From contig NEEC01000017.1 of assembly GCA_002189035.1 (NCBI GenBank), positions 1 to 64,000 of the forward strand: a stretch of 64,000 nucleotides of DNA. The letters run 5' to 3'. Source of the DNA: Utricularia gibba. Taxonomy: Eukaryota; Plantae; Magnoliophyta. The stretch's first letter is position 1, and the number at the start of each line of letters is the position of its first letter. Made by a program: the position numbers and the translations under genes. The notes under the pieces are model-generated. The model had not been told where the DNA came from. It searched no databases and saw only the letters and a program-made list of their open reading frames with translations. Positions 12,258 through 58,587 of the stretch are shown here, in pieces.

Positions 12258-15200
12258 GCATGTTGCAATAAAGATTGAGAATCAACTAAAGTCTAAGGGA
12301 CAACATAGAGACCATCCAAAACCTTCTACCTTGTGGAATGTTGCTGGAAGTAAGGAGAAGAAACCAAATTATCCTTCATTTGGGAAATCAACCACGCTTG
12401 GACCGATGAAAGAGGGCACTGCAGATACTCGAAACCAGGAAAGAGGATTTAAGTCCTCTGGACAAACACGAAATATCAAGTGTTTCAAATGTCTTGTCCA
12501 TGGTCATATTGCTTCAGAATGCCCAAACAAGAGGACCATGATTCTAAGGGACTCTGGAGACGTTGAATCTGATATTGAGTGTGAAAGTGGAAGTGAAGTG
12601 CAGGAGATAGATGATGGGGAACAACAACCTGTCATTGGTGAAAGTTTGGTAACAAGAAGGACTTTAGCCATGGATGCTAAGCCAATGGAGGAGCAACGAG
12701 AAAACTTATTCCATACACGTTGCTTTGTGAATGCGAAAGTTTATTGCCTAATAATCAATGGAGGCAGTTGCGCAAACGTTGCTAGTACTCTCATGGTAGA
12801 TAAACTCCATCTTCGTACTCTTAAACATCCAAATCCCTATAGGCTTCAATGGTTGAACGAAGGGAGTGAATTAAAGATCACTAAACAAGTTCTTGTTGCT
12901 TTCCAAATTGGAAAGTATCAGGATGAGGTTCTTTGTGATGTAGTGCCCATGCATGCTGGACACACACTCTTGGGAAGGCCGTGGCAATATGATAGGAACG
13001 TGATCCATGATGGCTATACTAACAAGTATTCCTTTTCTATGAAAGGAAAACCAATCACATTCTAAAAAAAGAGTTATGAGATTCCTTTTCTATGAAAGGA
13101 AAACCAATCACATTCTAAAAAAAGAGTTATGGTGCCTTTATCTCCAAATGAGGCACAAGAGGATCAAGTTAAGATTGCTGCTGCTATCAAATCCTTTGGT
13201 GATTCGAGTGATGAGAGCTTGAGAGAGAAAAAAGAGATATCACGAGAAAGGAAAAGAACATCTAAAAAAGAGTGAAAAGAAAGACGTGAATAAAGAAGTT
13301 GTGAGGAAAAAAGAAGTGGAATGCCTTGTTACAAGAATGAGTGATGTGAGTTATGCCTTTTGGATTGACTAATGCACCTAGTACTTTCATGAGATTGATG
13401 AATCATGTATTGCATCACTTTCTTGGGAGATTTGTAGTTATTTACTTTGATGATATTCTTGTGTATAGTAAGACATTGGATGAACATACATGTCATTTAC
13501 GTGAAGTGTTGGTTCTTTTGAGAAAAGAGTGTTTGTATGCTAATATCAAAAAGTGCGACATTTGCACAAACAAAATCTACTTTCTTGGAGATATTAAAAG
13601 TGATGCAGGTATTTTAGTAGATGAAGAAAAGGTGAAAGCAATTAGAGAATGGCCAACTCCTACCACAATTGGAGAAGTGCGTAGTTTCCATGGATTGGCT
13701 AGCTTCTATCGTCGTTTTGTAAAGGATTTCAGCACAATTGCTGCACCATTGAACAAGGTTGTGAAGAAAAATGTGCAATTTTGCTGGGGAGAATCACAAG
13801 AACATGCTTTCAAGACACTTAAGGATAAGCTTAGCTCAGCTCCTTTACTTGCATTACCTGATTTCTCTAACACGTTTGAAATTGAATGTGAAGCTTCTGG
13901 AGTTGGAATAGGTGCTGTTCTCATGCAAGGAAGTCGACCTATTGCCTATTTCAATGAAAAATTGGGTGGAGATACACTAAATTACCCAACTTATGATAAG
14001 GAGTTGTACTCATTGGTTAGAGCACTTGAAACTTGGAAACATTATCTTTGGCACAAAAAGTTTGTTATCCATACAGATCACGAAAGTTTGAAGCATGTCA
14101 AGAGTCAAAAAAATCTCAATAGAAGACACGCAAAATGGGTGGAGTTCATTGATACCTTTCCTTATGTTATCAAATATAAGAAAGGTAAGGAGAACATTGT
14201 TGCAGATGCATTGTCACGAAGATACACACTTTTAGCTACTCTTGATGCTCAAATTCTTGGATTGTCAACGATAAAAGAATTTTACAGTCTTGATCATGAT
14301 TTTAAAGATATTTATCTTTCATGTGAACATAAACCTCTTGAAAACTTCCATAGGCAAGATGATTTTCTTTTCAAAAAGAATAGATTATGTATTCCTCAAT
14401 GTTCAATTCATGAGTTTTTAGTGAAAGAAGCTCATGGTGGTGGTCTAATGGGGCATTTTGGGGTCACCAAGACATTGGACATGCTTTAACAACACTTCTA
14501 TTGGCCACACATGAGAAAAGATGTGGAAAGAATCTTTGGAAGATGTTTGGTGTGCAAGAAAGCCAAATCAAAATCAACTTCTCAAGGATTGTACACTCCT
14601 CTTTCTACTCCTCTTTACCCTTGGATTGACCTTTCTATGGATTTTGTTTTAGGATTACCAAGGACTCAAAAGGGAAAGGATTCAATATTTGTGGTCGTGG
14701 ACAGGTTCTCCAAGATGGCACATTTCATTCCTTGTCACAAGACTGATAATGCTTCGCATGTTGCCGATTTATTCTTCAGGGAGATTGTTAGGCTTCATGG
14801 TATGCCACTTACCATTGTAAGTGATCGTGACACAAAGTTTCTTAGCCACTTTTGGCGTACACTTTGGAGTAAGTTGGGAACAAAGCTTCTTTTCTCTACC
14901 ACTTGTCATCCCCAAACTGATGGACAAACCGAGGTAACAAACTGAACCCTAGCTACTCTACTTCGTGCCATCATAAAAAAGAACATTAGAACATGGGAAG
15001 ATTGCTTACCTCATATTGAATTTGCATACTATAGAGCAGTACATTCTTCTACTCATTGTTCTCCTTTTGAAATTGTGTATGGTTTTAATCCTCGTGCACC
15101 TATAGACTTGTTGACCTTGCCATCTAATGAATTTCGTAGTTTTGATGGTGCTAAGAGAGCAGATGCCATCAGAACACTACATGAGAAGGTTCGAAATCAA

Positions 15201-29363: not shown

Positions 29364-30394
29364 TGTAAACCCTAAAATCGATTCTGAATTCAAAAAATTT
29401 CAAGTGAGAAACTCGACAAAACGAATGGAGTATGCAATATAAAACCATAAGATGCATTTGTCTAAACCCAAATGAACTAAACATAGGTTTAGGCCTTACC
29501 TAACAACCAAACGTGGCCTAAGGCTTCGTAACACAATAAATAAAATAAAAGCAATAAAAGCTGTAGTTACTAGATGAGGGAGGAGTCCTTCACTCCATGT
29601 TTCAGCTCTTTTACTTCCTAAAGAAGGTCTCCAAGCTGACCAACATTTCAAGCTTCTTTAAGTTGCACAAAGGGAGTAGATGCATGATTGAATTGTTTTA
29701 CCATTGGTGCACATTTCACAAATTCCTGAATTGACTTAGAACAAATTTATTTTCTTTATATTATTGGTCCATAAGATTTCAAAATTAAACATTAAAATTT
29801 GATTTTAATGCCAACATAAAAAAAAACTGAATCATGAACTCCATGAACATATGTGCAAGAATTGTAACAATCTAACGATAACCATGTTGTGCTAATTTAA
29901 AAATAAAAGCAATAAACATTAATTAACACAATTTTCCAGAAAAAAATAAACCATGATTTTCATCACACTCAGAACTAACTCTAATCATGGACAAAATGCA
30001 ACAAAAGTACTCGAAACCTAATCAACTAAAATAAATCTAAATATTGAAAATAAAATGCAAAATAAAACTTAGCTAGGGTTGCCTCCCTGTTTATAGTCTA
30101 GTACTCGACTCTCTTTGGGGCTATGTTTTTATCATATCTTTCAATACCATATTGTCAGCAACGTGATGGACCTCATTCTCAAAAGTTTCACAAGAATTGT
30201 TCAACAATTTGAATACTCCATCTTTGCATCTCCTCCACTAATATGGATCATCCCAAATGCCAGATTCTTCATCATTGAAATACATGTTCCTTTCATGGTA
30301 TTCATTTCCAAATGGTACAATTCCTATAGTGATAAATTAACAATATCAGTAGAACCTCGTTCCCAAGTTGTAGTCTTACCTAGGAGTAACTGTT
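29364..30394 (-). mobile_element. Athila-like Ty3/gypsy internal remnant
   Basis: Minus strand encodes WDDPY (30241-30255), as in Athila pol. GGGTTGCCTCCC motif at ~30075. Confidence 0.6.
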
Positions 30395-31872
30395 TGTTGG
30401 GTTTCTCGTAGACATCGTATGTCACAAAAGCAACGGAATTTTAAAAAACTTTTAGAAACCCCAAACGCAAATCTCGGAATATGGTGTACATTAGACAAAG
30501 GGATGTTGAAAATACCATTCAGATGACTCCATTGTTCACCAACCGCCAATAGCAGACGCCCTCTATGGTATCCACACGTGGAGCACTCCGTCGATAACCT
30601 TCTCAAGGCTGTTGAATGATGGTCGAATTCCTTAGGTACTAGTAGAGAAAAACGCCACTTTGTGGATCAATCTCTGAGAGCACAAAGACCTTGAAGCTTA
30701 TCTGTAGATCTAAATCTTTTAATAGATATTTGGTGACATATCAAATCAAATCTCCACAAAGATCCCATCTTGTGGACATATGTATATGTTCCCAATCTTA
30801 TCTATACAAGATCTTTTATTTTGAATTTAATCAATATTAATCTCAAAATAACTCTCTATTTAATTTATCCAATTTACCAATTACATCTCATGTAATTGTG
30901 TCATTCTATTTTATATCGATGAGTGACTCCACTATTGTGTGTGACCCTATAGGCTTCTTCAATTAAGGCCGTAATAATGGATTTATTAATTAACTCTTAA
31001 TTAATCAAATCCATCATTATCGATCATGAGTTATGTCTAGCAAAATATCATGATTCCCAAGATGTAAGAATAATCAGGTGAACTGATTGAGCCTTTCCAC
31101 GACCAGCCACCATGCAATGAACAGCCTTCATCATATTTATATCTCATTCGATACTAGAACATGGGTGTGTGTCTTTCTGATGTATCGAACTTATAATTGC
31201 ATTCAAGCACTAACACTCAAAGACCTACTCAAACAATTCGAGTGTCATTACCCTGGGCCTAGGACTTACTGTTATGCTTTGATGCAATTACTTGAGATAT
31301 GATCACATCGCTAACATGAGTGATGAATCCTTTATTGATCAATCAACTATCTCCAACCTTAAGGAGTCACATCCCTACTCATCCATACTAGGCAAGCCAT
31401 GGTTAGGCTTCCATTAGTAATGAGCGAAAATGTGAGCTTAAGATCAAGATAACTTTGTTGACCTCAAGTCTAAGCTTAATTGCACGGCTATCATATTCGA
31501 GATCTTGCTACTGACACTTGGTTAGCTTCCCATAGTAGCATCTCAAGATGAGTCATCCAGTGAATCGATTCTCTAATCGACACCTACACATAGGTTTTAG
31601 TAATCTCATTACATCAATTGTGAGAACCATTGCATGAATAGTTTAGGGAACTCAATGTGTGCAAGCTTATCTTCATTTCACAAATACTCAAGTCAGGGAG
31701 TTTTATATTGATCATGAGTGCTTGAAGAATCTCATATTATGATCTCATCATAATTTCTATAGCACATAGATCAAGTAGAGGATTTTATCAATGATATAAA
31801 TTTGATCACAATTCAAAGTAAATATCAAAAGATAAGATTTGTCAATGAGTTGATTGTCTCTAGAACACATAA
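30395..31872 (-). mobile_element. Near-complete ~1.48-kb copia-type (Angela-like) LTR, reverse orientation
   Basis: Begins TGTTGGGTTTC (reverse of the ...AAACCCAACA LTR end). Reverse-complement matches to 27649-28237, 31875-32232 and 38717-38883. Confidence 0.72.
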
Positions 31873-32989
31873 TTTCGATAATGATGGATTTGATTAATTA
31901 AGATTTAATTAATAAATTCATTATTATGGTCTTGATTGAAGAAGCTTATAGGATCACACACAATAGTGGATTAACTCAACGATATAAATAGAATGACACA
32001 ATTACATGAGATGTAATTGGTAAAATGGATAAATTAAATAGAGAGCTATTTTGAGATTAATATTGATTAAACTCAAAATAAAAGATCTCATATAGATTTG
32101 ATTTGATATGTTATAAAATATCTATCGAAAGATTTAGATCTTCATATATGCTCCAAGGTCTTCGTGCTCTCTGAGACTGATCCACAAGGAGGCGTTTTTC
32201 TCTACTAGCACCGGAGAAATTCGACCAGCATTTAGAGGTGGGTTCGGTACCAACGAACCGTATGGTTTCGGTTCGGAACCGAACGTTTCCAACGAACCGT
32301 CATTTCCAAAACCGCGGTTCACTGTAGACAACGGTTCCCGTTTCGGTTCGGAATCGTACGGACGAAACCGTAAACCGAACCGAAACCGGAACCGTACGGA
32401 CGGTTTCGGTTCGGAACCGGAACCGAGATTCGGGAACCGAACCGTAACCGGAACCGATCGGTTACTGTTTATATGTATTTTCCAGGCACTCATAAGAATC
32501 ATTTTGGGTGTTTGGCTGTGAAATTTGTAATAATTATTATTTTTTATATTTAAATATTATCAAACAATATATTTAATAATATTAATTTTTGTATTTAACT
32601 AGATATATTATGTAATATACTATATTAATTTTTAAAAAACTATAACTTAAATTACTTGATAGACTATCTCAATAAAATATAATTAAAATCAATATAATTT
32701 TTGACTTAAATAAATGAAATAAATAATTAAATTATTAGTATTTGAATATATATTTGATAAAATTAAACGAGCATATTTCACACGATACATATGGGAATTC
32801 AACGAATGTAACACTAACAACAACATAATTGTCTACTAGAAAAAAAAAGTTATCAACAAAAATATTTCAACTACAACATAAGTGTTCAAAAGAACTAATA
32901 TTAGAGGCTCACTCTAACAATCTTGTAGGCATGCATAATACTCCCATAAGGTATGTCCCTCACGTATGAGAGGCTGTCCTATTCAATTC

Positions 32990-34437
32990 TCATTAACATA
33001 ACTTAGAACATCGTTGAGGCTCAGAGGCACTCAAAGAGGGTCCGGTATATGCCCAACGGCTCTCATACCAATCCAACTTGGAGCGAAGCTCTTCATTCTC
33101 CTATGTTATAAATTCAAGTCTCTCATCTATATCATTGAGACCATGTGTGAGCCCGTCCCCTTCAACATCATTACTTTCTTGTGTCCTCTCATTCTTAGAC
33201 AAATCTTCATTCTTTTGGAATACTCTAGGATTCTTCAACACACCACACCAATAATGTTTTGTCCCCGGTGCATCCACAAATGGCGATAAAATGTCAATAA
33301 AACTCCTTTGCAAACGGTAGAAAAGGAGTATAAGATCTTGTACATCCCTCTTGTGCAAGTTATCAAAACCTACAATAAATAAAGATTAATTAACAATAGA
33401 TTCAACAAAAATATTCAAAAAAAATATTAAATATGAGTAATTTCGACAATTCTAAACTAAATAGCAATAAATTAAATACACATATTCGAAAAGAGTATTG
33501 AAAAAAAAAATTCAATAACACTACAATGTATAAATATATATACTCAATAAGAAAAGATTAAAAAATATTCAATAATGATAGATTGAATAAAAATAGATAG
33601 AAAAGTATTCAATAATAATAGATTGAATAAAAATACATTGAAAAAAAAATCTGTAAAAAATAATAAATAAGAACATAATAAAAAATTAACAAACAAATTT
33701 AATTAGATTAGATCGAATAAAAGTAAAATCTGAAAAAGATTTAGTAAAAACGAGATTTAATAAAATTAACTTGATTAAAAATATTTAATAACAATAGAAT
33801 TAATAAGAGTAGATTAAAAAACATTCAATTATAATACATTCAATAAAAACATTCAATACAAATATTCAATAAAAATATTCATTAAAAATATTCCATATTT
33901 TTATTCATATTTCTTCTAGTAATACAATGAAAGATTTACCTTTTGTCTTGCCTACTTCACTCGAATTAGGATGCATTTGAGGAAATCTTGTTTCCATTGG
34001 AGTATGTATCCAAACAAAGCTTGTTCACCATTCCTCAAATCCTCTTCTCACGTCTGTCACTAGTACCAACCCTTTTTTCCCCTTTAGTGTGTAGTGGTTC
34101 TTGTTTGGAGTCCTGAACATACACTCACAGCAAAAAAATAACGAAGTTCCACCTCAAGAGATAACTCCTCACAAATACTCACAAAAGCCAATACATATGA
34201 GATCGATCTTGGAGTTAAATGAGATAATGGAATCTCTAAACATTCTAATATTTCTTCTAAAAAGGGCAACAATGGTAAGCGCAAACCACAACAAAAATGC
34301 TCTGTGCTTAAGGCAAATCCCATTGGACCCACGCGGTTTGGAATTTCACTCTCAATCAACTCATCCGGTTCTTTCTCCCAAATCTCATACTCATCCGGTA
34401 TCAAGAATCTAGTTCTCAATTTTTCAGAAGTGTACAT
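32990..34437 (-). pseudogene. Spliced accessory gene with a Transposase_28 (PF04195)-like domain inside the hAT element
   Basis: Exon 34437-33940: LRTRFLIPDEYEI...CGLRLPLLPFLEEIL...LSHLTPRSI...W*TSFVWI, with a frameshift at ~34085 and a stop at ~34025. GT-AG intron 33939-33370 joins in frame to ORF 33101..33358. A 5' intron spans 34547-34438. Confidence 0.7.
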
Positions 34438-35209
34438 CTACAAAACACCCATAGGTATTGTATAAAAAATCAAATTACAATAATTGGACAAGGTATTTCA
34501 ATTTGGAACACAAATCAGCAACCCATGATGGAAAATAAATCACATACCTTGTTTAATTTAAACAACACTCCAAGCAGGTGGTGGGACTGTGGGGGTGTTC
34601 GGTCGCTTTCGGCTGGGGGGGACGGGGAAAGAGGTAAGAAAATTTTCTTACCGAATGGGTGAGGATTAGGGTTGTCTTAATTGTCAACGTGGGGAGTGGG
34701 TAAAGTGGGGACTGGGGTGGTGATGTGTAGCGCTATGTCTGGGTGCGTGAAGAGTTGGTTTAATTATCGAAATCATTAGGTAATGATTACGCACAACATG
34801 TATGTAGGTTCATAGGTTGTTAGTAATTATTTTTGTTGATTTTAGATGAGAAGTGTCGCTCGCTTCAATCGATCCGAACCCATTGTGTAATTTTTTTGGA
34901 AATGCTGTTTAATTACTCCAATTTTGAGTCACCCAGAGTCGCTAATGTGGGCGCCTAGCACCGTCACCCGTAAAATTATATTATCTAGGCACCCGTACCC
35001 TAATATTTGGGAATTGCGCAATTTTAAAAGAAGACTTAATTTTCAAAAATATACCATTGTTTTCGTGCATTAATTGGATTATAAGAAATTTAAAATGAAA
35101 TTCTTTCATATATCCTAAATATTACAAAACAAATTAAATGACATGTTAATTAAACATTGAAATAAAATTTCAATAAATAAAAAATTTTCATGTGTCGTTT
35201 AGACCATCT

Positions 35210-35631
35210 TCTAGACACCCACATTGTATCGTGTGGGTGTCTGGAAAGACACTAGGATACCCTTTTCCAGGCACCCACAATGCCTCGCGTGGGTGTCTGG
35301 CAAGAGTGGGCGAGACCATTTCCAGTCACCCATATTTGCACATGTGGGTGTCTTGGAGTGTGCAATCATATTCCAGGCACTCTATCTTTAGGAATGATAT
35401 GGATCGAGTACATTATTTATTTGACTTAAAAATATTGCACTCTATTCTTATGTTTTCTAAGGATCGAATATCAGTGTATAATAAAAAAATGCACTCTATA
35501 TTTAGGAACGATAAGGATCGAGTGTATTATTTATTTGACTTGAAAATATTGCACTCTATCCTTATGTTCGATCCGTATGAGTGCAACCCTATTCCAGGCA
35601 CCCACATTTACACATGTGGGTGTCTGGTAAG
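35210..35631. repeat. Repeated ~38-bp hairpin modules and a 54/60-bp alternating tandem repeat
   Basis: TCCAGGCACCCACA-N8/9-TGTGGGTGTCTGG type modules at ~35210, 35262, 35319 and 35590. GCACTCTAT recurs at 35377, 35437, 35491 and 35551. Confidence 0.8.
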
Positions 35632-35814
35632 GATGTATCCAAAGGTTTTGGTAATTGCTCGGATCATATAATTTTAATGAAAGGCATGAATACAGCGTAC
35701 TTCATCTTTATACAAATTAATAGTTCTTCATGAAGCACACAATGTTATCAAATTAGGAGTCTTCAACTTCATCTTCACTTGAACTTGAGGATAATGTTTG
35801 ATTTCTTTTCAATG

Positions 35815-37915
35815 CTTCTAGCCAATCCTTTAGACAAATGCATGCCTCCAGGGTCTCTACTTTCAACTTGGACCGCTTGTGATTAAGAACTCGTCCCCTT
35901 GCACTAAACGCACTTTCGGATGCCACTATAGATGCTGAAGGTGATTAAGATCTTTGGCATTCTAGCCAAGATAGGGAATGTAGTAGAATTTGTCTTCTAC
36001 CAACCCAATATATCAAAGTTGTCATCATCAACACCCTCAACAATAGGAGTATTATTGTAAAGTGTAATTTGATCAATGGAATTTAATGAAGATGATGAAG
36101 AGGATGACACAAATGAGGTATGTTTTCTACGAATAATGTCCATCGGAGTGCGACTACCAAACATCGAATTATTACATGTTTTAGGAATAGGAACACTAAG
36201 ATCACTATATTTAGAAGTATAAAGGGAATACATAGCACGTAAAATATTGTTAGCATCAACATCTTTTTCTTCACAATTTTTAATGGAAAAAGCAACATCA
36301 TCTACACTAAATGACTCCGAAATGCATTCAACTAATGTTTTCACACCTCTAGATTTAACCCGAGGATCCAAAATAGGTGCAATAAGAAACAAATGTGGGA
36401 TTTCATCAAAATATTTCAAAAACCCATTTTTCATATTTCGCACTACATCCCCCAAAAAATCACAATCAGTTTGATGATCATAAAAAGCAAACGAAATTTT
36501 ACAAATACATGAAAGCACAAGTTGAGAAGTTCGATAATAAATACCACTCAAAATTTTAGTACAAGAATAAAATGTTTCTAGTAAATTTACTAAACCTCTT
36601 ATTTTTTAAAAAATAGAATGAGTCAAGAAATTGAAACCCGTAAAAGATTCACAAAATTCAATAAGAACATTTTCATAAGGAATCAAAAATTGTAACATAT
36701 CATATGCAGAATTCTATCTAGTTGGACAATCATTTTTAAATTTTCGATAAGATATATTTCTTTCTTGAAAAATCCTCTTATAATCATCTCTTTTATTAGG
36801 TGTAGTTCTAATCATACCCACTAAATCACGAATAGGAGTTAAAAAAATTTCACATTCTTTTAAACCATTTTGAACACACAAATTTAAGATATGACAAGTG
36901 CACCTAGTGTGGAAAAAAATGCTATTCAATATAGGATTCATGCTACTTTTCAAAATGTGAATAGCATTGGTATTTGCAGAGGCATTATCCAAAGAAATAG
37001 AAAAAATCCTATCAGATATTCCATAAAATGCTGTGACCTTTTCAATGATTTTACCAATAGAAAAACCATTATGTGGTGATGGCCATTCTTGTAAAGATAA
37101 AATTCGTTTTTGCATACACCAAGAATTATCTACCCAAGAACATGTAATAACAATATAACTCTCATTGTTACAACCTTTCCAACCATCACAAGTCAAACAA
37201 AAATTATATTGTAGAGATTTAAAAGTAGAAATTAAATAGTCACGCATGTTTTTAAAATCCTCAAGTGCTATATGATGCATGGTTTTCCAGGAAAAATTTT
37301 TGTATCCCGGTTGAAAAAGAAGATTTTTGTATCCCTTTCAACATATCATTAAAAGAAGATTTTTCAACTAATGAAAAAGAAAGTTCATTAAGTATCAAAT
37401 AACGCACCACACTTACTTGAAAAGTTTATAATTAAAAAAAAATTAGATAATCTCACACTATTATCATCCCCTAAACATAATCTAGTCTGACAAAACTGTA
37501 GTAATTTATCATTATACTTTTCCCTAATATGCCTCTTATATGTACCGGTTCCCCAACCCTGTTTGAAAGTATACTCTTTACCACAATGTTTACAAGAAAT
37601 TTTTTCGGGATTAGAAACAATAATATGCTCTCCAACATCCAAAGAATCATCACTAGAATTTTTTGATCTTTTACGAAAAAGGGGACTCGATGAGGTTGAA
37701 GAACCCACTTCTTGAGGACTAGAAAAATCATCATCTTCGGGTAAGGGACCACATTCAAGTTCTTGTAAGAATTGAAGATCTTCCCCAAAAGAAAATTCTC
37801 TATCATTTTCAAAAACGCAAGATATAGTAAAATCAGCTTGAGAAGCTTGAGAAATTAAATTAATAGCAACGGATACTTTCAAAACCCTGTGCAACCCCAC
37901 AGTGTGCACAGTCAC
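35815..37915 (-). pseudogene. hAT transposase (BED finger, DDE core, C-terminal dimerisation domain), disrupted
   Basis: KISCKHCGKEY...RH; CLTCDGW; ISLDNASAN; HTRCTCHILNL; APILDPRVK; FDILGW; after that VASESAFS in a shifted frame. Confidence 0.92.
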
Positions 37916-38883
37916 AAATGCATGTACTAGTCGTTGAGATTAATATATATATAAAAAATATATTTTAAATATGATGCTGTCACGTCAGTCTTCACATGAG
38001 TATTTTAAATATATACTTATGTTTAAATATGCATTGTACTACAAATATGGATAAATTAGAGATATTGGCAATGCATAATTAGTTATTGAGAAAAATATAT
38101 AGGTAATTAAATGTTAAAATATTTATTTGGTTGAACTATCGAAATTATTCAATAAATTTGAATAATTTAGTATTTTTCTATTGAGGTTATACATTTTATA
38201 TTTATTAATTTCATTCTAATTTTATAATTTCTATTATATAAATAAATGAAATAAATTATTAAAGTGATAAAATTATCAGTAATTGAAAACATATACAATA
38301 AAATTACATTTTTTCAGACACCAACATTAGCTTGCGAGTGTTCGGGAAGAACATCTGAAAGTCACAGACCATTCCCTGGCCACCAGCATTTACTCATGCC
38401 TCATGTAAGAGTGTCATGAGGGTGCCTGAGATCATTTTCCAAGCACCCACATCTATTGTCAGTGTTTCTAGGAAAGGGTGTTTCAGAAGATTTTCCAGGC
38501 ACCCACTTCCATCGTATGGGTGTCTGAAATCATATACATTTATTTATTTTTTTAATTTTTTAATTTTTTAATTTTTTTTTAATTTTTTTCGGTTCCGAAC
38601 CGACGGTTTCGGTTCGGAACCGTGAACAGTGCGGTTCGAACACGGGTCGGAACGGTCGGTTCCACGGTTCCAAATTTGCCGAACCGAACCGAAACCGTAC
38701 GGACATCCACCCCCTGAAAATGTCTGCTATTGGCGGTTGGTGAACAACGGAGTCATCTGAAAGGTATTTTGAACATCACTTCGTATGATGTATACCGTAT
38801 TCCAAGATCTGCGTTTGGGGTTTCTCAAAATTTTTAAAATTCCGCTGCTTTTGAGACATACGATGTCTACAAAAAACCCAACA

Positions 38884-41766
38884 ATTTGGAGAGTTTATAA
38901 CATCGTTCATGTGATGTGTGAACTTTTCTCCATCTTATGGACTACATGAAAATCAGAAAAAAAATATCAAATCTTCAATTCGAATTAGGACATCGTCTAC
39001 CAAACCTTTAGGAGAAATGACACTTCGATCTACAAATTCAATTTGTACTCCGGATGCTTGCACGGGTCTCAATCTAAGAGCTTCATAAACTAAATATGAG
39101 ATTACATTAACAGAAACTCCTAAATATGCCCGGATCCTTGCATTTTTTAGGAAGCTTTTGAGTGGGTAATTAACTTCATCTTGGGTTTGGACATGCAAAG
39201 CCGCTTCAAATATTTCGCACTTCTTTACACCATAGAAATATAGTCCAAAATAGTTAAATTAAGTTGAACACTATCCAAGGCCTTCAAAATCTTATTCTTT
39301 TCATCTTTTTTTTCTTTTGTCATCAACTTACAAGGAAATAAGGGTTGAGTGATCTTCACTTTTAAGAGGTTCCCAATGAACCACCATTTTTTCCTTGTCT
39401 TTAACCGCAACACTAAATTTCCTCTTCTCATCAATCTTAGTCTCAGATCGGACTATGTTTCTGTCAGGTTTCTCCTTACTGTTCCTCAATGTCAATGCGC
39501 TGCAATTCAATCTTCTACCAGAATTTGAATATGATGCTGTTGGTTCCCCTTTCTTTTTCAGTTCTCCAAGCTCCAATGTTGTTTTATGCATGCTGATTGA
39601 ACCATGAACATTTTCATCGTTTTTTTCAAAGAACTCGAAAAAATTTCCTCCAACATTTCTTTGGCTTGAATATTGAGATTTTTGGACTTGTTTTAGAAAG
39701 GTGGAACCTATGCATTCTTTGTTGCTCCTAAAAATTTTGCTGGAAATTTTGTTGCACCATGCTTGAAATTTCTCCCTTCTACATAGCCTCATTGTTGTTA
39801 CAATGAGAGTTTGGGTGATCCCTCCAACATGGGTTATAAGTGTTTGAATATTAGTCATATTCTTCCTTGAGTTGAAGGTCTTAATCCCCCATAGCCTTGA
39901 CATGCTCTTCTTGAAATAACTTTGGATATTCATTAAAAGATGTTCAAGTCTGTGATAGTTTCCAAATGGCATGTTCTTAACTTAGAATAAGAACAACTTC
40001 TTCATCATTTAAGACATAGCACCAACATTTTTCGTGAGTTAAATCATCTTCATAAACTCTTGGTACATGGCAAGGAGTCTTCTCAACTTCGGTGCTTCCC
40101 TTGATTTTTTGATTCCTTCTAGCAAGCCTCTTAAACTCAAGATTGAAATCAAAATCCCCTACACCAAAGGAATACAAATGCATCAACTAAAAACACAAAA
40201 CAATTGAACACCCCTCCCCCGTATCAGTGCCAATTTGATAAAAGAAAATTATACAAGTCATTAAAATTGCTAATTCACATATCAAATAAATTTATAAACT
40301 AATTCACATCCAATCATACGAAAAATATGAGAAAAGTGGATCGGGGTCGAACACAAGGAACTACATGCTTCTCATGTAAATGTTTTTACATGTTGTTTTT
40401 TTCATGGTTGGAAATTAAGTCTAAGTTAAAAATAAAACAAGTTTACAATAAAATACAATAGAGAGATAAACAGATAAATTCGACTACTAAGTAGAACAAG
40501 ATTATGAAATCGAAATCACTTACACCAAATGAATACAAATGCATCAACTAAAAACACAAAACAATTGAACACCCCTCCCCCGCATCGGTTCCAATTTGAT
40601 AAAAGAAAATTATACAAGTCAAATTACTAATTCACGTATCAAATAAATTTATAAACTAATTCACATCCAATCATACAAAAAATATGAAAAAAGTGGATCG
40701 GGGTCAAACACAAGGAACTACATGCTTCTCATGTGAAGGTTTATGCATGTTGTTTTTGTCATGGTTGGAAATTAAGTCTAAGTTAAGACTAAAACAAGTT
40801 TGTAATAAAATACAGTAGAGAGACAAACACATAAATTCGACTATTAAGTAGAACAAGATTGTGCAATGCCTTGAAGCTTCCAGGAGTAGCATGATCATTG
40901 ATGCACTTAACTCATCCAACCCAACAATCATTCACCTAACAAATAAAGGATTCAAGTCTACCTAAACCTTTCTTTTCCCTAATTGTTGGTCTACCTCTAA
41001 CTAGGTTATTTTATGATGAATTTCATTACTTCGTCCTCTTGGATCTATCCTTGTTTGATAAGCTAGGTAGTCTAATAAGCAATAATCATGCATACTCCCT
41101 TCTACTCAAGGCATTATGTGTGTTTAGCCACTCATGCTAATGTGAAATGAAACACGTATGTAACATAGAGAACGCAGCATGTTCATGTAATGACGCAAGC
41201 AACAATAACAAAAGAAACATAAATAGAAACAGAAATCGTAAATATTTCGTGCAAAAAGCTAAAACCACTCCTGGCTAGGAGTAGTGTTGATAAACAAAGG
41301 AAAGTTCAATGGTAAGCTTGGTTCTTCGTTTTGTCTTGTTCTTTCTTCTTCTTCTTCATGGTTCTTCTACGATTCCCTACTAGATCTCCTTCCCATAAGT
41401 CTGTAGCGAGTTGTTCAATGGGGAGATATTTCTTTCTCACTCCTCATTATTCTCAAAATCCTCTTTTTATCTTCTTGGAATTTGGTATTTCTTTTTCTTC
41501 TCTTTTGTCTCCTTTTCATGCTGCCTTTATTGTATGCTTTTTCACTCATTGGGATTTGTATTGTTGACATATGCTACATTGCTCATGAAAACGATTAGAA
41601 CTAAAATTGGAACTAAATCTTCATTTAGTCTCAATTAGGAATAAAAGTCACAAAAACACAGAAATACACAATAAAATCTGAGTTTTGCAGTAAAATATTA
41701 ATTATTTTCCTATTTTTAAACACTCAAAGGTGTCGAAGTAATAATTAGAGATAAATGGCACTATCA
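38884..41766 (-). mobile_element. Athila-like Ty3/gypsy 5' portion: LTR, degenerate PBS, gag and protease remnants
   Basis: LTR start TGATAGTGCC at 41766. Inner LTR end/PBS-like junctions at 40236 and 40597. Protease-like AYLGVSVNVI...FVDRSVISPKGLVDDVLIRI at 38953..39198. Gag N-terminus-like DFNLEFKRLARR. Confidence 0.72.
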
Positions 41767-42723
41767 AGAATCTTATTGGCATGCATGTACATCTTTAATG
41801 AGAGCATATGAGATGTAATATGGTACTTGAAAAAGTTCTATAATAGAATAATTATGGTATATCAATGAGGTGCATAGGTGCAATCGAGCAACAATAGTAA
41901 AATTCCATTCCATAGAAAGTGATGATAATGATAGTTTGTTATCATGAGTATTCTAGTCTTTAGATTTTTCAATGAATGCCTTTCAATTTGGTCGTCAAGT
42001 TTTGTATAGTGATGGAGCACATTTTTATGATTGATACAATTTTAAGGTTTCAATTGTTATTCTTATTGATGAAAATAATTGATATAGCATATACAATAGT
42101 ACCCTCAAAACTAGACCGAATTGAGCATGATTATTGAGAAAGCTGCATCCACACATGATGCAAAGAACACAAGGTATTTGCATAATAAGTGATTGAGGTA
42201 TTGAACTCATTTCTGCTTTAGGGTTTAGAAATTGTATGTCCTCAATGCAGTAGAATTTAAAATTTTTTGAGAAATTCAAACCATAAATCTTAGAATAGGG
42301 TATATATTAAATAAAGCGATTCTGAAAAACGCCTCTCATTGGACTCCGTTGTTCACCAATTGCCAACAATAATTGGCCACTATAATATCCACACGTTCAG
42401 CATTACATCGATAACCTTCTCAAGGCCACAAAAAGATGGTCGATTTCCTCAGATGGTAGTAGAAAAAATTGCCTCCTTGTAGAAAAATCTCGAAAAGAAT
42501 AAAGATATCAAAATCTCAAAAGATCGATTTTTTCTTATTATCTTATATAGATATTTGATAACATATCTAATCAAATCTCTTTAAAAATATTATCTAATGG
42601 AAATCTAATAGATATATATGTTTTCAAATCTTATCTATATCATATCTTTTATTTTGAGATTAATCAATATTACTCTCAAAATATGTTTCTATTTAATTTA
42701 TCTATTTTTACCAATTACATCTC

Positions 42724-49335: not shown

Positions 49336-51699
49336 TCAGATAATTACATTAAACATTAAGCAAATAGAAGAAATTTTTAAATTTTATTTACTTTCCAAAA
49401 AATGCTCGTTACACTATGGGTAAAAATAATTTTTAAAATTTTCTTGTTTCATGTTTTTTTAAAAAATTATGAATTCTTATGTGTTTAACATATAATAAAT
49501 ATATTGAATAGAACATCAATAACAATAACAAAATCGTTTTCTTTTTTTCATGACGATGAAAAGGGTCGTAGGTGTCCTCAATCGCACATGATTCATTATA
49601 CTGAACTGCTCCTGGACTTTTTCATGACACTACGGCTTATTCTTCAGTCTTGCGTTAATGAAAATAAAAGTTTTAAAGGGAATATTATTTGCGTTAATTA
49701 CTCCACTTCCATTGCACCTACACTGTATAGTACCATAAAATCTACGGCTTGTGGTTGCTATCTCGCGAAATTTGTCTTCATCACCAATCCTTTTAGATTG
49801 TTCCTTTACTCTGGTCAGCTTTCCATGGACTCCTTAATGGGAAGTCATTTACAGCTACCTCTGACGTGAAATACTCTACACCTAGCAGCATCGAAAGCCA
49901 GAGCTCGGAAAACACACAATAATGGGAAGTAGTTATAGTCATCTGCGGAAGTTGAAATTCGCGGGCCAATTTTTTAAAATGCCTGTGTCAGATTAAAAAA
50001 TTTGTAAAAATACCTGTGGTTTTTTTATACTTACACAAATACCTATAGTTTTATATTTTCTTGTCAAAATACCTGTGTTTTTATTATTAAAAATATAAAA
50101 CAAATTTTTAATAATATATGTAGTTTTATCCTGTGTTTTTTTACATAAATGTATTATTATTAAAAATATATGTAGTTTTTTAAATTGAAAACAAATTTTA
50201 ACCACTTTCACTTTCTTTTTATATTTACTCAATAAAAATTTAGAAATTTGACTAAATATTGTAATTACACATTTTATATATATTTTTTTGTTTAGTGATA
50301 AAATACATTTGAAAAAATATTCGAATTTGTACTAATTTCGAGTTATATATTTATTTTTGTAACATTTGAAAATTTATGATATATTAGATTAGTTGTTTAT
50401 TAAATTTGATAATATTTTGATTTATTAAGAGTTTTTACATATGAATACTTTTCGATATATTAATTTTTATTTTTTCAAAATACAATAATTTAAAAACCAT
50501 ACTTTTTTGTTTTGCTGTTACTAGGTAATTAAAAATGTAATCAGATTTACATTAATAAATTTTTAATATTCATCTAAATTTTAGATTTTTTATTTCTTTA
50601 ATCATTATTTTTTCTTTATTAACAAAATTCATCCATTTAAATATTCTTTTAGACAAATAATTCAGCCCTTTTATTAAAATAAAAGTTTTTATAAAATTAT
50701 CTATTAATATTTAGTTATTATGAAAAGAATTATATTGTTTTCATCTTTTTTAACATAAATTCATTGTTATACTTGTAATTTTTATTGAAATTAAAAAATA
50801 AATTTAAAAGATCAACAATTTACTTTTGTATATTAATTCTTGAACATTTAACTATTACTCGATTAATGTTTTATATTGTTATGGGTGAAATAGGTATCCG
50901 TTGGGGGCCGGTTTCAGGTGATAGGCGCGGTTGGGAATGCCACGCTTGGTCACGTTCTTCACGGTTGGTGCGATTGAAATAAGAATGAGCAAGAATTTTT
51001 ACGTGGAAACCGTCGGAAAGCGGAAAAACCATGGAGCTGCCGGAGCTCGTCGGAGAAGAGTTTCACTAGATGGAGATCGTTAAGAGGAGAATACAAATTG
51101 AAGAAATCTTTTTTGTCCCACCTCTTTCTTGTCATAATTCCGTCTATTTATAGGAGAGCTCACTCTGATCGAATTCTGGTGTCCGCAAATATCGGTTGCT
51201 TTCTGCTCCTGCTATATGATCTCGCTTTTCAGATATCGGCCGCCTGTTATTAGCCCTTTTTGGGGTAAATCGGGGGATCAGAACTACTACGATACCGATT
51301 CTTGAGCTGCCGCTTCCCCCGAATAAGCCACATGCCGTTCTCTGCCACGCGTCAGTTCGTTGGCATGCCACGTTTTTTCCCGGTCATTCTGGGTACCCCA
51401 AACGTCACGACGCTTCGTCTCCTTGAACTTTCCCGTATAAATAAGCGCCCTTCGCTTCAGTTCTTTCCTTTGCCCTTTCTGTTGCCTGCAAGAGTTTTGT
51501 GCCCTCCGTGCTCCGTCACACTCGTCCGCCGCTCGATCATCGCGATATCCGTCGGAAACCGCCAATTTTCCAGGTATCATTCGGTTCTTCGTCTTTTCTG
51601 TTCGGTCTTCTGGGATTTTTGACGGGTCCCCCTTGTCATTCTAAGTACTTCCCCCTCCCTGACTCCTGCCTCGTTCTAGGGTTTTGGGCTTCTTTGAAA

Positions 51700-53925
51700 A
51701 TGGGTAGGAGATCTAGTGAACTAAACATCCCCTCCCTTCGCATTCGGTATTCGATCCCTGATGAGTACCAGCTTTCTCATGCTCGGGATACTGAAATCCC
51801 TTGGGGGTAGGTGAGGACCCCCTGCCTCCATTCAGTCTCCCAATTCCACTTGCCTATTTCGAAAGCGGTTTACGCTTCCCTTTTCACCCTTTCATAGTCC
51901 GTTTTCTCTATACCTTTGCAATTCCGATTTACTGTCTTGCCCCGAATTCCATATTCTGCTTTACCACTTTCCTTTTCTATTCGGTCGGTATGGATCCGGC
52001 TATGACTCTGATAGACTTCTGTCATCTCTTCAAGATAGCCGTTCGTAAAGCTAAGTCCCCGATGGATGACCGATCTCACTTTCAATTCCGCCGATTTGAA
52101 GATAACCCCAACTTTGTTGTTAAAGCCCTCGATACCCACCATGATTGGTGATCTTCTTTCGTTTGGATAGCTCCCCCTTTGGGTTCTCGGTGGAACTTCC
52201 CAGTCGATCCCCCAAGTCCTTTCAGGATCAAGATCTTGGGTGCATATCGGTCTTCTTCCGAATCTCACGAAGTCCTTTATGAGAGGCTTAGTCGGGGTTC
52301 AGTTCGGTATGAGTCTCATGCCTTGATGTTCTCGGGTGAGTCGTTGAAAAGATCAGGTATTATCGGTCGTTCCCGAGACCTCCATTGGCCCGATATCATT
52401 CCTTTCGACGGCACCGATTCGAGGAGCCTTCCTCTTAGCCCCTCTTCATCCTTCCCTCTTGTTCCGGCTTCACCTCCGATTCCCCCACCTGTTCAAACCG
52501 GGGCCCCCAAGAAAAAGAAGAGGGTTAAGACAGTTGCACACAAACCTCAAAGAGGCAAAGAGGTAGTCGGGTTCAGCTTTCCCGAGTCTCAGAATCGGCA
52601 CTATGCCTTATTGCTTTTCCTTCTTTCGTTTTCAGCTGAAGAGATGGCTCGAAGAAGCTCTCTGGAAGATTCGGTGATGGCGCGGTTGTCTGCCGAGATG
52701 TAGAGGATGCAGGAACCCGAGGATCCCTCCCCTGCACCAGTCTATCTCCTATTTAACAGTTACCGCGAATTCTCGATTATAACCTTTTTTCCTTTCAGGC
52801 TGATACGATTGGAGCTCAGCTGGACGCCGCTGATCCTTCCTCAGGGAAGATCAAGTAGTAGAAGTCTCCGAGATCCGGGAGTTGACTTCCCGTCCTTCAG
52901 CCGGGAAAGGGAAAGAGAAACTTCCTCCATCACCCGATCTCAGCTATTCTCCTATTCCTGATGCAAGATTCTTTTCGGCTGGTGCTTCAACATCGGCTCT
53001 TCCAATCGAGTTACAGAGGGATTCTCCCTCGCAGAAGTAAGGGACAACCCGGTGCTTCCTCTACCTTCAGTTCCAGCTGAACTAAGGGGAATCCTGGATG
53101 GAGCTATGTCTAGTACCTCGGGTGTTCAGCCGGAGGCAGTACTGGAAGGGATCTGGCAGGTACGTATCCCGTTTCCTCTTCTAAATTCTAAGTAGTCGGT
53201 CCTTGACTTGGGATATTCTTTTAGGCTCTGACTCTTGGGTTGGGAATGGTTAGAGAGATTGGCTCTCAATCGGAGGAAGTCTCTCGGCTTCAAGCCCAAG
53301 TTGTGGCTCAGAGCGCCCAGATAAAGTTGTTGGAGGAGGAGGGGAGTTCGCTGAAAACCGTTTTAGGGAAACGCAGCCGCCAGGAGGAAGAACTGTGAAA
53401 TGTGATCGAGGAAATGGGAAAGGCGGTTGACGACGCTCAATCAGAGAGAGAGGGCTTAAAAGTCCGATTTGAAGAGGCAGAACTGGAGTTAGAGCATGCC
53501 AGGGCCGCATTTCAGCATTGGAGGCCGAATTACTTGATCGACAAGCATCTCGGCAGGGTCTTCTGGATGACTTTGTCAACTCGGCCTGTTTTGCCAAACT
53601 CTCTGATATCTATGCAGGAGATTTAATCGGCTTACTTCTATACCGTCAGAGACGACAGTTTAGCCGGGAATTTGGGCTTTCAATCATGGATCCGCGCTTC
53701 GACATGATAAACCCCTTGATGAAGGATGAGAACATGCTTGATGTTATCACGGATACTTTCCAGGCCCCGGAGTTCGGGTTCGAAGCTGATCGGGAGCGAC
53801 TGATTGCACTGATTCAGGCGAGGATAGGGCGAGAGAATGACGCCAAGCTGAGGGCAAGGATGGAACGGCATACCGGTTCCTCTGCCAATCCTCCCGATAA
53901 TCCCCCATCCCCTCCTGTACTTTAG
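51700..53925 (+). pseudogene. Antisense accessory gene of Retand (Transposase_28-like domain, NLS, coiled coil)
   Basis: LRIRYSIPDEYQL...FESGLRFPFHPFIVRFL...LAPNSI...W*SSFVWI; PKKKKRVK (52506-52529); intron 53160-53224; E/K-rich helical C-terminal part. Contains stops and frameshifts. Confidence 0.78.
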
Positions 53926-54699: not shown

Positions 54700-57600
54700 A
54701 TTGATATTGAGTCGGTTAGGCGTAGAACTTCCTTACATGTGACGCGTTCCATGACCTTGGGAGTTCCACGCCATCTAATTGTTCCAGGCGATATGCTCCT
54801 TTTCCGATCACCCTTGAAATCCGATAAGGGCCTTCCCAGTTGCGGTCTAATTTCCCGACGTGTCTTTGTGGTTGGATGCTTCGGAGCACCAAATCTCCCT
54901 CGGAGAATTCCCTTGAGGATACCGAGTTGTTGTAACTCTTTTCCGTTGTTCTCTGATAAGCCCCTAGTCGGCTATAGATGCTTCATCGCTTCTCTTCCAA
55001 CAGCTCCAATTCCAGTTTTCGGAGTTCAGTATTCTCTTCTTCGTTATAATGCTCTACCCGATAGCTCTTCAAGGTCAGTTCGATAGGGCATAAGGGTTCT
55101 GATACGTAAACCAATAAGAATGGGGACTCTTCCGTGGTGGTTCGAGGGGTAGTGCGATATGACCACAGTACCTCATCTAAGCGATCTGTCCATTACCCCC
55201 AAAATCTTCGAGCTTAGTCTTCATACCTAGTCGGAGCGTTCAGTTCGTTACCTGTGTGAGGCCATTGCTTTGCGGGTGATATATCGAGGTGAAGTTGTGC
55301 TTGACGAATTGAGTTCCGTTATCAGTCACTAGCTCTCGAGGGATTCCGAACCGGATGAAGATGTTTTTCCACAAAAATCAGATAACGGTCTCCTCCAAGA
55401 TCTTTGCCACGGCTTCAGCCTCTACCCACTTGGAAAAATACTCAACACCCACGATGACGAATTTCCTTTGACCCGAGGTGTGGGGAAGGGCCCCATTATA
55501 TCCACCCCTCATCGGTCAAAGGGGCAAGAGAGTGGGAGAGAGATCAGTTTGCTTACTGGTTTTCTTGGTATACTTGCATGGTATTGGCACACTTTACACT
55601 TCTTCACCATATCGATAATATCCTGCTTCATAGTTGGCTAGTAGTACCCGGTTCTTAGAACTTTCCGGCATAAGGATCGTGTTCCAATATGGCTGCCGCA
55701 TTCACCCTCATGTAGATTGGTTATGAGTTCTTGAGAATGCTTTGCCCCGATGCACCTCAATAAGGGTCCATCTAAGGATTTGTGATAGAGAATTTCATTC
55801 ACCAACGTATACCTCTTCACTCTAATCTCTAACTATCGGGCTTTCGGCTTATCAGATGGGATTTTCCCATTTTGTAAATACCGGATGTAGGGCGTCGTCC
55901 AGTCATCAAGGGGACTCAGTTGTGAAGAGATATTGTTTCCCGGTTGCTGGGTGATATGATTCACGGCTCGTAGGCTTACCGAAGGTTGGTCCCGCAACCG
56001 AATTGTCACACTTCCTTCTCTTAACTCGTGAAACCCTGCTGCGAATCGGGCGAGGCTATCCACGGACCCGTTTTTCTCACGTGCTATGTACGACAGGGTG
56101 AACTCCTTGAAGGTTTTAGCCAATTCCTTCACCTGGACACGGTACACAGCCATGAGGCAGTCATGGGTTTCGTATTCTCCGAAAATTGCCCTTGCACAAG
56201 CCACGAGTTGGTGTAAACGTCGAGTTCTGCCACTCCCAGCTCCTTGGCGATTTTCATTCCCTCGATCAGGGCTTCATATTCGGCCACATTGTTGGAGGCA
56301 GGGAATAAGAATTTCACCGTAATATAAATATGCTCTCCTTCTCGGGTTCTAATGTCTATCCTCCTCCGGCACCGTTGTATGTTGAGCAATCCACGTACAT
56401 AGCCCATCGGTCATTGGCTTCCATGAAACGGTCTATAGGCCTGGTCATTTCGACCACAAAATCGGCAAGAGGTTGGGCCTTGATTGCTGTTCTCGACTTA
56501 AACTCAATATCCATTGTACTTAATTCAACTGCCCATTTGGCAACCCTTCCAGAAATCTTTGGACGAGATAGGATGTTCTTCAGAGGCCGATTGGTGAATA
56601 CCATGATGTGCCGATCTTGGAAATATGACCTCAATTTGATGGCTGCCCTCTTTAGAGCCAAGATGAATTTTTCTGTCACCGTATAGCAAGTTTCGGCCGG
56701 TAACAAAACTTTGCTTACATAATAAACCGGCAAGTGATTATCTACCGAGATGGTTGTCAAGACTACGCTGACTGCAACGGGCGATATAGACAGATATAGT
56801 CCTAAGGGCTCCCCTGCTTTCGGAGCCACAAGAAGCAGGGGTGATGAGAGATATTCCTTGAGTTTCTCAAAAGCAATCCGGCAATCCTCGTTCCATTCTA
56901 AAGCACTTCCCTTTTGCAAGACCTTGAAGAAGGATTCCGACTTATCGGCTGATCGAGATATGAAACAGCTGAGGGCAGCCAATTTACCCGTGAGGCTCTG
57001 ATACTCCTTGATTGTCCTCGAGGGTTGCATTTCGCATATTGCCTTAATCTTCTCGGGGTCAGCCTCGATTCCTCTCTCTGATACGTAATACCCAAGGAAT
57101 TTTCCACTTTGCATCCCGAAGCAACATTTCAATGGGTTAAGCTTTAACCCGTATGACCGACATAAAGAGAAACACGAATCCAAATACGCTAAATGGTCTT
57201 CTCCATTCATAGATTTCACGATCATATCGTCCACATACACCTCCATTGAGGTATCAATTTCATAAGAGAATATTTTATTTACCAACCTCTGGTAAGTCGC
57301 CCCAGCATTCTTCAATCCAAAAGGCATTGCCACGTAGCAGTAAACCCCATCCTTAGTGTAGAAGGTGGTTTTCGGTTGGTCTTTCTCTGCAACGAAAATT
57401 TGATGATACCCCGAATAGGCATCCATGATGCTCAGGAATTGGGATCCGGCAATGGCGTCTACTAGCTTGTCGATCTTTGGAAAAGGATAAGGGTCCCTTT
57501 CGCAGCAGGCGTTGAGGTCGGTGAAGTCAATGCACATCCTCCATTTTCCCCCGGGCTTCGGGACGACGACTGGGTTGGCTACTCATTCGGAGTACTAGAT

Positions 57601-58587
57601 TTCCTTCACATAACCAGCTTCCAAGAGCTCTCTTGTTTTTTCTTTGATAATTTGGCACTTTTCCTTTGAGAAATGTCGTTGCTTCTGCTGAACCGGTTTT
57701 GCCCCCGGGTAGGTATCAATGTGATGTTCGGAAACGGATCGATCGATGCCTACAAAATCTGCAGCAGTCCAAGCAAAAATATCGGTGTTCTTCATCAAAA
57801 GTTCAACTAACCTTTTCTCGAATCCAGCGTCTAGATTGGCACCGATGCGGGTGGCTTTCTGCGCATCTTCTGGTATTAGTTGCACCGACTTGTACCCTAT
57901 TGGTTCCATTGCTTGCCTAGGGGGTTCCCGGGGTTCCTTTTCTGCCATCATCACTCTCGACTTTTTAGCGCAGGGGTCCCGACAGGAAGATACGTAACAA
58001 GACCGGGCGGTTGGTTGGTCGATATCCATCGTGCAAATGCCCTTCGACATTGGGAATTTGATTCTCAAATGCACAGTGGAGGGTAACATACCGAATTGGT
58101 TGATGCCGAGTCGCCCGAGGATGATGTTGTACGAGATCCCTAAATCCAGGATTAAGAATTCCAACCTCTCGGTTCGGCTCCGCCTTGCCGCTCCGAATGT
58201 TACGGGCAGAATTATTTTCCCGATAGTTTGCACGGCCCGCTGGTCGAATGCGTAAAACTCCATGCGCACATGGCGAATATTTCCCTCGTTGGATGACGCC
58301 AGTAACTCGCCCACTTCCTTCTTCATGATGTTGCACGAGGATCCTTGATCGATAAGAATCCTCCTTACCTTGGCACTCCCACATATTCTTGACACCACCA
58401 AAGGCTCATCTCTCATGGCTGGGCCGGACGGGACGTCTTTGTCGGAGAAGCTGATCTCTTCCTTTTCCCAAGCAGCTTTCTCAGTCGGACCATTTCCGAT
58501 TTTGAAAACTTGTCCTTTTCTAGCTTCATCCAAATATCTCTTCCGTTCCTTTCCAGACACATCCATCTCGGTTCCTCCGGATATCAT
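54700..58587 (-). pseudogene. pol: Retand pol: protease, RT, RNase H, additional archaeal-type RNase H, integrase
   Basis: ILIDQGSSCNIM; MCIDFTDLN...MDAYSGYHQI...YVDDM; SNNVAEYEALIEG (aRH); H..ECGSHIG integrase zinc finger. Several stops and frameshifts. The 3' boundary is approximate. Confidence 0.92.

Follow-up and report, generated by a model that had tools for sequence, protein, structure and literature searches.

A decayed hAT transposon of Utricularia gibba with a second, TRP28-encoding gene downstream of its transposase

We analysed a 64,000-nucleotide (nt) stretch of the Utricularia gibba genome (NCBI GenBank assembly GCA_002189035.1, contig NEEC01000017.1, positions 1 to 64,000 of the forward strand; "the window" below, to whose numbering all positions refer) and found in it a 6.5-kb hAT transposon that holds, besides the remnant of its transposase gene, a gene for a protein with the TRP28 domain (Pfam PF04195, Transposase_28). 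We think it likely that the transposon belongs, as a dead copy, to a many-copy hAT family in which a transposase gene is followed downstream, in tandem on the same strand, by a spliced accessory gene. TRP28 has been described from antisense open reading frames (ORFs) of Retand-lineage gypsy retrotransposons (PMC11963269; PMC6317226); 97% of the Retand clusters that were recently active contain it, DNA binding has been predicted for it, and in a 2025 survey it was without similarity to other known transposons (PMC11963269). Its occurrence in a hAT element suggests that unrelated transposons share one helper-protein module.

The accessory gene runs on the minus strand from ~34720 to 32983, downstream of and parallel to the transposase and inside the element ends (Table 1). 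This agrees with a preliminary description of the same DNA, made from the letters alone, which had placed a second gene within a hAT element, in the same orientation as the transposase. Starting with ATG, the stop-free stretch at 34087-34437 (117 residues) scored 38.9 bits against PF04195 (cut-off 26.2, E 1.1e-9). Among TRP28 proteins, conservation reaches past the 69-residue Pfam core, through IP.EYE, GLRFPLHPF, L.PNSI and LF..F to W-K-x-x-F-F-x-V some 150 residues in, and in alignments with 22-24 homologues the hAT gene holds every conserved block, in the order IPDEYE ... GLRLPLLPF ... LTPRSI ... YFF ... HYTLKGKKG ... W*TSFVWI (asterisk, stop). The conserved G21, P25, L34, P46 and F55 columns are kept (GLRLPLLPF, L64, TP and F85; numbering mapped by motif), and N47 is Arg (LTPRSI).

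Exhaustive phmmer comparison of the 117-residue piece with 1.84 billion representative proteins returned 35 remote matches (best E 5e-8), and each of the ten that were scanned carries PF04195 alone. A word-indexed protein search with the same piece gave no match, and two scans of metagenome contigs, one with the TRP28 piece and one with the transposase core, gave no relative. As to the surroundings of the homologues, P0002 has host genes around it and no hAT in its vicinity, P0016 is flanked by an acyl-CoA oxidase gene and by a gene model whose product matches a copia-type reverse-transcriptase family, and P0003 and P0009 are on 1-kb contigs.

Past a frameshift near 34114 the TRP28 domain carries on in another frame (34028-34153), crosses an in-frame TGA at 34025-34027 and reaches the splice donor AAAAG/GTAAAT at 33940/33939; after a 570-nt candidate intron the in-phase frame resumes through 33369-33104, where it meets a TAG at 33101-33103. 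The preliminary description had read a 110-nt intron ending at the ATG and a 570-nt intron spliced in frame. Both GT-AG pairs exist and the longer is in frame, phase 1 on both sides, with a G+C content of 15.5% vs 39-40% in the flanking exons; the two introns themselves remain predictions. One contig from sequencing run X7 has 33372-33932 replaced by 12 letters, with ~21 nt left between the splice sites, and could come from a copy with a deletion inside the intron, or from a paralogue that lacks the 570-nt intron. The stop in W*TSFVWI, shared with the Retand-like ORF described below, was also considered as a splice donor (TG/GTGA) or a site of readthrough, and the intron was rejected because the conserved motif goes on in frame three bases later. 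With the frameshift and the two stops, the copy is pseudogenised, as had been described; the accessory-gene locus is dead, a fossil that does nothing today. The C-terminal 94-residue piece and the middle pieces matched no Pfam family, nor did they match the C-terminal part of the Retand ORF.

The window holds a second TRP28 ORF, in a gypsy retrotransposon whose architecture is as described for Retand (PMC11963269) and which we assigned to that lineage by architecture. The long terminal repeat (LTR) pieces of this Retand-like element (50903-51202 and 60222-60521) are 96% alike, and it has gag, reverse transcriptase (RT) and RNaseH within 55836-59764 of the minus strand. Its ORF is decayed and likewise above the PF04195 threshold (51795-52148; 29.5 bits, E 8.7e-7). 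The four motif pairs that had been quoted for the two ORFs are all present: LRTRFLIPDEYEI, GLRLPLLPF, LTPRSI and W*TSFVWI on the minus strand in the hAT gene, and LRIRYSIPDEYQL, GLRFPFHPF, LAPNSI and W*SSFVWI on the plus strand (51736-52169) in the Retand-like ORF. Direct BLASTP of the two gave E 1e-6 with 36% identity over 42 residues, and the likeness of the two ORFs exceeds chance. The proposal of a module shared between class I and class II elements therefore stands in that the hAT gene is a true PF04195 homologue of the Retand-type ORF, with a likeness at the level of the domain only. The hAT TRP28 is no closer to the Retand-like ORF of the window than to TRP28 proteins of other species, so that no recent exchange between the two elements of the window is implied. 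The position antisense to the element, between pol and the 3' LTR, is that of the Retand-like ORF and not of the hAT accessory gene. Because the latter belongs to a hAT element and shares the strand of its transposase, we regard it as a homologue, not a member, of the Retand ORF class.

Both TRP28 genes have TGG-TGA followed by [TS]-S-F-V-W-I (TGA at 34025-34027 and 52149-52151), and the shared TGA falls where intact homologues of other species have Lys in W-K-x-x-F-F-x-V. This may be a coincidence, such as independent CGA-to-TGA decay if both genes used Arg, or it may reflect something shared.

The limits of the hAT element were read from the host sequence around it. The alignment of a host repeat ends at 32232 and picks up again at ~38722, and contigs from empty copies of that repeat differ from the window past 32232, where they carry the expected host sequence (loose end CAAGAGCCTTGAGAAGG...). 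Because the host repeat is interrupted once and the empty-copy contigs continue past 32232, we take 32233-38716 to be the insert and a single insertion. The element ends read TAGAGGTGGGTTCGG... and ...CCACCCCCTG. The left 20 nt (32233-32252) and the reverse complement of the right 20 nt (38697-38716) match at ~14 of 20 positions with two indels, and are thus imperfect terminal inverted repeats (TIRs). As in hAT elements, these are short, start with YAGRG (TAGAGGTGG... and, as reverse complement, CAGGGGGTGG...) and are accompanied by subterminal repeats. The host repeat is itself a nested palindrome, with arms 27657-28237/31307-31871 that are 96-100% complementary and inner arms at 30394-31023 (also given as 30380-31030) and 31875-32232 plus 38722-38884; at 42226-42708 there is a third copy, which is diverged, and the repeat may be a foldback-type element.

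Two family-specific palindromic motifs are essentially restricted to 32233-38716 in a motif scan of the window. The subterminal unit CGGTTCGGAACCG has 13 matches in the window vs 0.34 expected, 11 of them at 32269-32419 and 38590-38655. The other motif, CCAGGCACCCAC-N10-GTGGGTGTCTGG, has 15 matches vs 1.9 expected, 13 of them within the element, and its copies sit upstream of both genes (38310-38529 in the case of the transposase). It is a candidate binding site of the transposase or of the accessory protein. In the intergenic region a 78-nt unit is repeated at 35377-35568 (spacing 114 nt, 91% alike), and several contigs jump 120 nt there, from 35422 to 35543, so that the copy number of this unit varies among family members.

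The transposase, described earlier as lying upstream of the accessory gene on the same strand, was recognised there by its domains: zf-BED (PF02892, 37391-37915, E 1e-3, just short of the cut-off), hAT-like RNase-H (PF14372, 36000-36551, E 1.4e-8) and Dimer_Tnp_hAT (PF05699, 35756-35926, E 9.9e-9). They follow one another on the minus strand in the order of a hAT transposase, in a broken frame. Many sister contigs leave the window at 35943-35958 (4 and 11 loose ends in run X7), which suggests an additional private deletion or rearrangement just upstream of the dimerisation domain.

We examined other copies of the element in Logan contigs of three DNA runs from different samples (X1, X2 and X7) and one RNA run (X11), aligned to 32200-38199 with a likeness threshold of 85%. 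The contigs that fit this region number in the hundreds to thousands, most of them 90-99% alike, and the hAT family is therefore a many-copy one. Summed word depth in X7 is similar over its two genes, ~1,090 over the accessory exons and 950-1,500 over the transposase. Single contigs bridge the parts of the element. Record 3 of X1, ~95% alike, spans 34559-35180, from the leader of the accessory gene into the intergenic motif region, where record 12 of X2 spans 34659-34952; record 6 of X1 (35511-35778) and record 20 of X7 (35447-35805) join the motif region to the end of the transposase, and record 17 of X7 (32293-32610) joins the terminal array to the region behind the accessory gene. No joint that skips the whole accessory gene was seen among the 15 of 88 joints listed. 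Because diverged contigs from other copies cross the gene-to-hAT junctions, the accessory gene is, as far as short contigs can tell, not a private nested insertion; the separate insertion or one-off capture that the preliminary description had weighed against its own reading is thus not what the sister copies point to.

The sister contigs also bear on the defects of the window copy. Position 33103 is T, not A, in all of them, so that the TAG of the window is a Lys codon, and most have one extra base (A) at 34114, where the frameshift of the window is absent. At 33011/33012, 6-9 contigs per run diverge from the window in both directions. Read in frame on the minus strand, the sister copies run ...SLSASEPQR/KLIILDVNGV across one side of this point, and across the other (T/S)FLEGL(W/R)YAH/DVLSYVNEN followed by a stop (...FLEGL.YAHDVLSYVNEN*). 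The two-sided in-frame divergence indicates that the window copy is internally deleted and that the family gene is longer. The gene is accordingly longer than the preliminary description had it, the stop at 33101 being a private mutation, and the deletion had not been noticed there.

FCP1/NIF domains of the HAD class begin with DxDx(T/V), their motif I. In our reading, KLIILDVNGV would form the first strand of an FCP1/NIF-type HAD phosphatase domain together with its motif I, in which D-V-N replaces D-x-D. The FCP1/NIF domain (PF03031) is missing from the window copy, and the 10 and 19 codons visible in the sisters are too short for a profile search. The family gene apparently encodes TRP28, a helical linker and an FCP1/NIF-like, phosphatase-like domain. 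If the domain is of FCP1/NIF type, the D-V-N motif would make a binding domain or one of impaired catalysis more likely than a standard phosphatase.

Structure prediction placed the TRP28 part among its homologues. The AlphaFold model of the 117-residue piece (34087-34437), with a predicted local distance difference test (pLDDT) of 87, matched 30 AlphaFold DB clusters at template-modelling (TM) scores of 0.54-0.74 by query; the named ones are almost all "Transposase (putative) gypsy type domain", and the check proposed earlier returned TRP28-type matches alone. The extended domain of the intact homologue P0009 (residues 123-300, model md14b70436677) was modelled as an alpha+beta fold with pLDDT 86.6 and a predicted TM score (pTM) of 0.83. 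No solved structure was similar to either model (Foldseek E above 2, best Z 4.9 and 2.5), the VIA-align Z of 2.5 for P0009:123-300 being unusually low. Among Swiss-Prot models, P0009:123-300 superposes on Arabidopsis ASY2 718-861 (TM 0.69) and At3g60930 158-312 (TM 0.74) with E ~3e-7; this superposition belongs to the model of the homologue, not to the broken protein of the window. ATLANTYS retrotransposons encode "globular and long-helix domains" that are structurally like ASY2, which has been described as acting by coiled-coil oligomerisation (PMC13547354). Since the TRP28 model superposes on ASY2, the globular part of the ATLANTYS module is most likely TRP28, a family (PF04195) that PMC13547354 does not name.

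Several observations weigh against a two-gene hAT family as read here. The shared gene order was pieced together from overlapping short contigs and not from one end-to-end molecule. Summed word depth does not equal copy number, and TRP28 genes from other families of transposons may contribute to it. No RNA run listed holds the stretch and X11 gave zero contigs, so splicing at the two candidate introns and expression are without support from these runs. Among the 1.84 billion representatives no close protein relative was found (identity at most 45%), and the phosphatase-like label is drawn from 10 and 19 codons and the DxDx(T/V) pattern. The 8-bp target-site duplication of hAT elements is absent (flanks CCAGCATT vs AAAATGTC); ~58 bp of the host repeat are lost beside the right end, and the duplication may have been lost together with them.

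The missing duplication and the flank deletion do show a rearranged locus, and would suit a nested insertion or a rearrangement that happened once, at this place only. We hold that to be most improbable and largely refuted, because in all three DNA runs the gene, the intergenic region and the junctions are spanned by contigs 85-95% alike, which hence stem from other copies. The TIR-like stretch at 34861-34885 would further permit two elements to be read here, a non-autonomous hAT-like element with the TRP28 gene (32233 to ~34885) abutting or nested in a 3.8-kb hAT element (~34886-38716): 34861-34882 and the left terminal region (TGGGTTCGG...) are 73% complementary to each other, and the array of the palindromic motif begins just past this stretch, at 34917. 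However, the outermost bases are unlike the TIR start (CACAAT vs TAGAGG/CAGGGG), and with CGGTTCGGAACCG arrays only at 32269-32419 and 38590-38655 the transposase part would be without one of its subterminal arrays. Moreover, the host repeat is broken once, by the whole 6.5 kb, and the diverged record 3 of X1 spans the supposed boundary. We therefore consider two elements very unlikely, and prefer a single element with two genes.

Table 1. Positions of the features described in the text
Feature	Position	Strand	Details
hAT element	32233..38716	minus	6,484 bp, one unit inside arm 2 of the host palindromic repeat
Terminal inverted repeat, transposase-distal (3') end	32233..32252		TAGAGGTGGGTTCGGTAC
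Terminal inverted repeat, transposase-proximal (5') end	38697..38716		reverse complement CAGGGGGTGGATGTCCGTAC
Array of subterminal palindromic unit CGGTTCGGAACCG	32240..32460, partner array 38586-38700		motif count
Array of palindromic motif CCAGGCACCCAC-N10-GTGGGTGTCTGG	34917..35631		between the two genes; also 38310-38529 and a single copy at 32478-32510
hAT transposase remnant	35756..37939	minus	several stops and frameshifts; stop-free pieces only
Predicted non-coding leader exon	34548..34720	minus	upper limit uncertain; G+C 51%, donor AAG/GTATGT at lower end
Predicted 110-nt GT-AG intron	34438..34547	minus	AAG/GTATGT ... TTTTGTAG/ATG; stops right at ATG; sequence prediction only
Main coding exon, complete extended TRP28 domain	33940..34437	minus	Pfam PF04195, homologue alignments, model
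Predicted 570-nt GT-AG intron	33370..33939	minus	AAAAG/GTAAAT ... TTGTAG/GT; AT-rich, 13- to 40-bp repeats
Second coding exon (linker region)	33013..33369	minus	frame FDNLHKRD...ERLEFIT*ENEELRSKLDWYES...; private TAG at 33101-33103
Internal deletion junction	33011..33012	minus	two-sided contig divergence
Last ten codons (DVLSYVNEN + stop) of deleted C-terminal domain	32983..33012	minus	sister-contig reading
Decayed TRP28 ORF of Retand-like element	51736..52700	plus	antisense, pol-to-3'LTR region of Retand-like gypsy element

Elsewhere in the window, a DUF599 (PF04654) gene fragment lies at 61138-61626 beside the 5' LTR of the Retand-like element, and the first quarter contains a pol of copia type (8812-10632) and an RT-RNaseH of gypsy type (13356-14489).

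As for what an intact accessory protein would do, we suppose that it would act in trans for the hAT family. TRP28 with its helical part would be a chromatin- or DNA-associated oligomerising module, of the same fold as the accessory domain of ATLANTYS and a segment of Arabidopsis ASY2; we propose such a module because DNA binding is predicted for TRP28 (PMC11963269) and coiled-coil oligomerisation has been described for ASY2 (PMC13547354). The module might take the phosphatase-like domain to the machinery that transcribes or silences the element, and might thereby help expression or transposition. That the protein is a trans-acting helper, with a TRP28-helical module carrying a phosphatase-like domain to the element, is the functional reading that we prefer, with low confidence. 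We are somewhat more doubtful of its wider form, in which TRP28 and the helical linker, extended by the FCP1/NIF-like domain, would be a helper module under selection that has passed between class I (Retand) and class II (hAT) elements and acts, at whichever elements encode it, on the host machinery of transcription or silencing.

The gene could instead be passive cargo, a TRP28 fragment of a transposon or of the host that the hAT family transduplicated (Pack-type capture) and spread without being served by it. The broken state of the window copy and the missing RNA support for expression would fit such an origin. To our knowledge, hAT elements do not usually carry accessory genes. The gene is also flanked by family motifs (32478; 34917-35631) within the 3' subterminal region, as if it had been inserted into an older, simpler element. 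However, the captured unit would have been a whole gene, its leader, both candidate introns and the full extended domain included, and the two disabling point mutations of the window are absent from all or most sister contigs. Since those two defects are absent there, the copies that spread had a longer open frame. We judge passive cargo unlikely.

Compared with the TRP28 ORFs of Retand, the hAT gene is alike in scoring above the PF04195 threshold, in the motifs beyond the 69-residue core and in having a putative helical region after the domain. It differs in residing in a class II element, on the transposase strand and with candidate introns, in having Arg at N47 (numbering of PMC11963269), and in that its sister copies apparently run on into a phosphatase-like domain. 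The proteins of ATLANTYS, ASY2 and At3g60930 are also without a phosphatase-like part, and the fold match to them comes from the P0009 homologue.

A functional parallel among DNA transposons is VANC of the VANDAL Mutator-like elements, which binds family-specific non-coding repeats and removes silencing (PMC5735166; PMC10398659). Both are extra, non-transposase genes in a DNA transposon, and the hAT element has palindromic arrays upstream of both of its genes. Unlike VANC, which is structurally MAIN/PMD-like (PMC13547354), TRP28 has another fold and no sequence relation to it, and the hAT gene is known here from its sequence; a Pfam scan at E up to 1 gave no match to the PMD or VANC families. 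MAIN and MAIL1, which are PMD proteins, with the phosphatase PP7L, and the PMD-PP7 fusion MAIL3 act on transposon silencing and gene expression (PMC7156037). There too a domain of transposon type (PMD also occurs in extra ORFs of gypsy elements) is coupled, in cis or in trans, with a phosphatase-type domain. However, PMD is not TRP28, the phosphatases are of PPP type and not of the FCP1/NIF HAD type, and these are host genes, so that the likeness is one of analogy only.

In open-access papers, the literature on PF04195, TRP28 and IPR007321 ties the domain to Retand only, with no description from a DNA transposon, and we found no description there of accessory genes with FCP1/NIF in hAT elements or other DNA transposons. 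What is new here is the truncated hAT copy, the contig-based shared gene order and the fold link to ASY2 and ATLANTYS. The window copy, dead and with its C-terminal domain lost, contributes anatomy only. If the wider helper reading holds, the module would stand beside VANC as another, unrelated kind of counter-silencing or expression factor of transposons. TRP28 has been the hallmark extra domain of Retand, and the hAT gene gives a comparative handle on its role. With a TRP28 gene that is, as we think likely, an integral and spliced second gene of a hAT family, the domain would not be tied to retrotransposition, and whatever TRP28 does would have to serve copy-and-paste and cut-and-paste elements alike.

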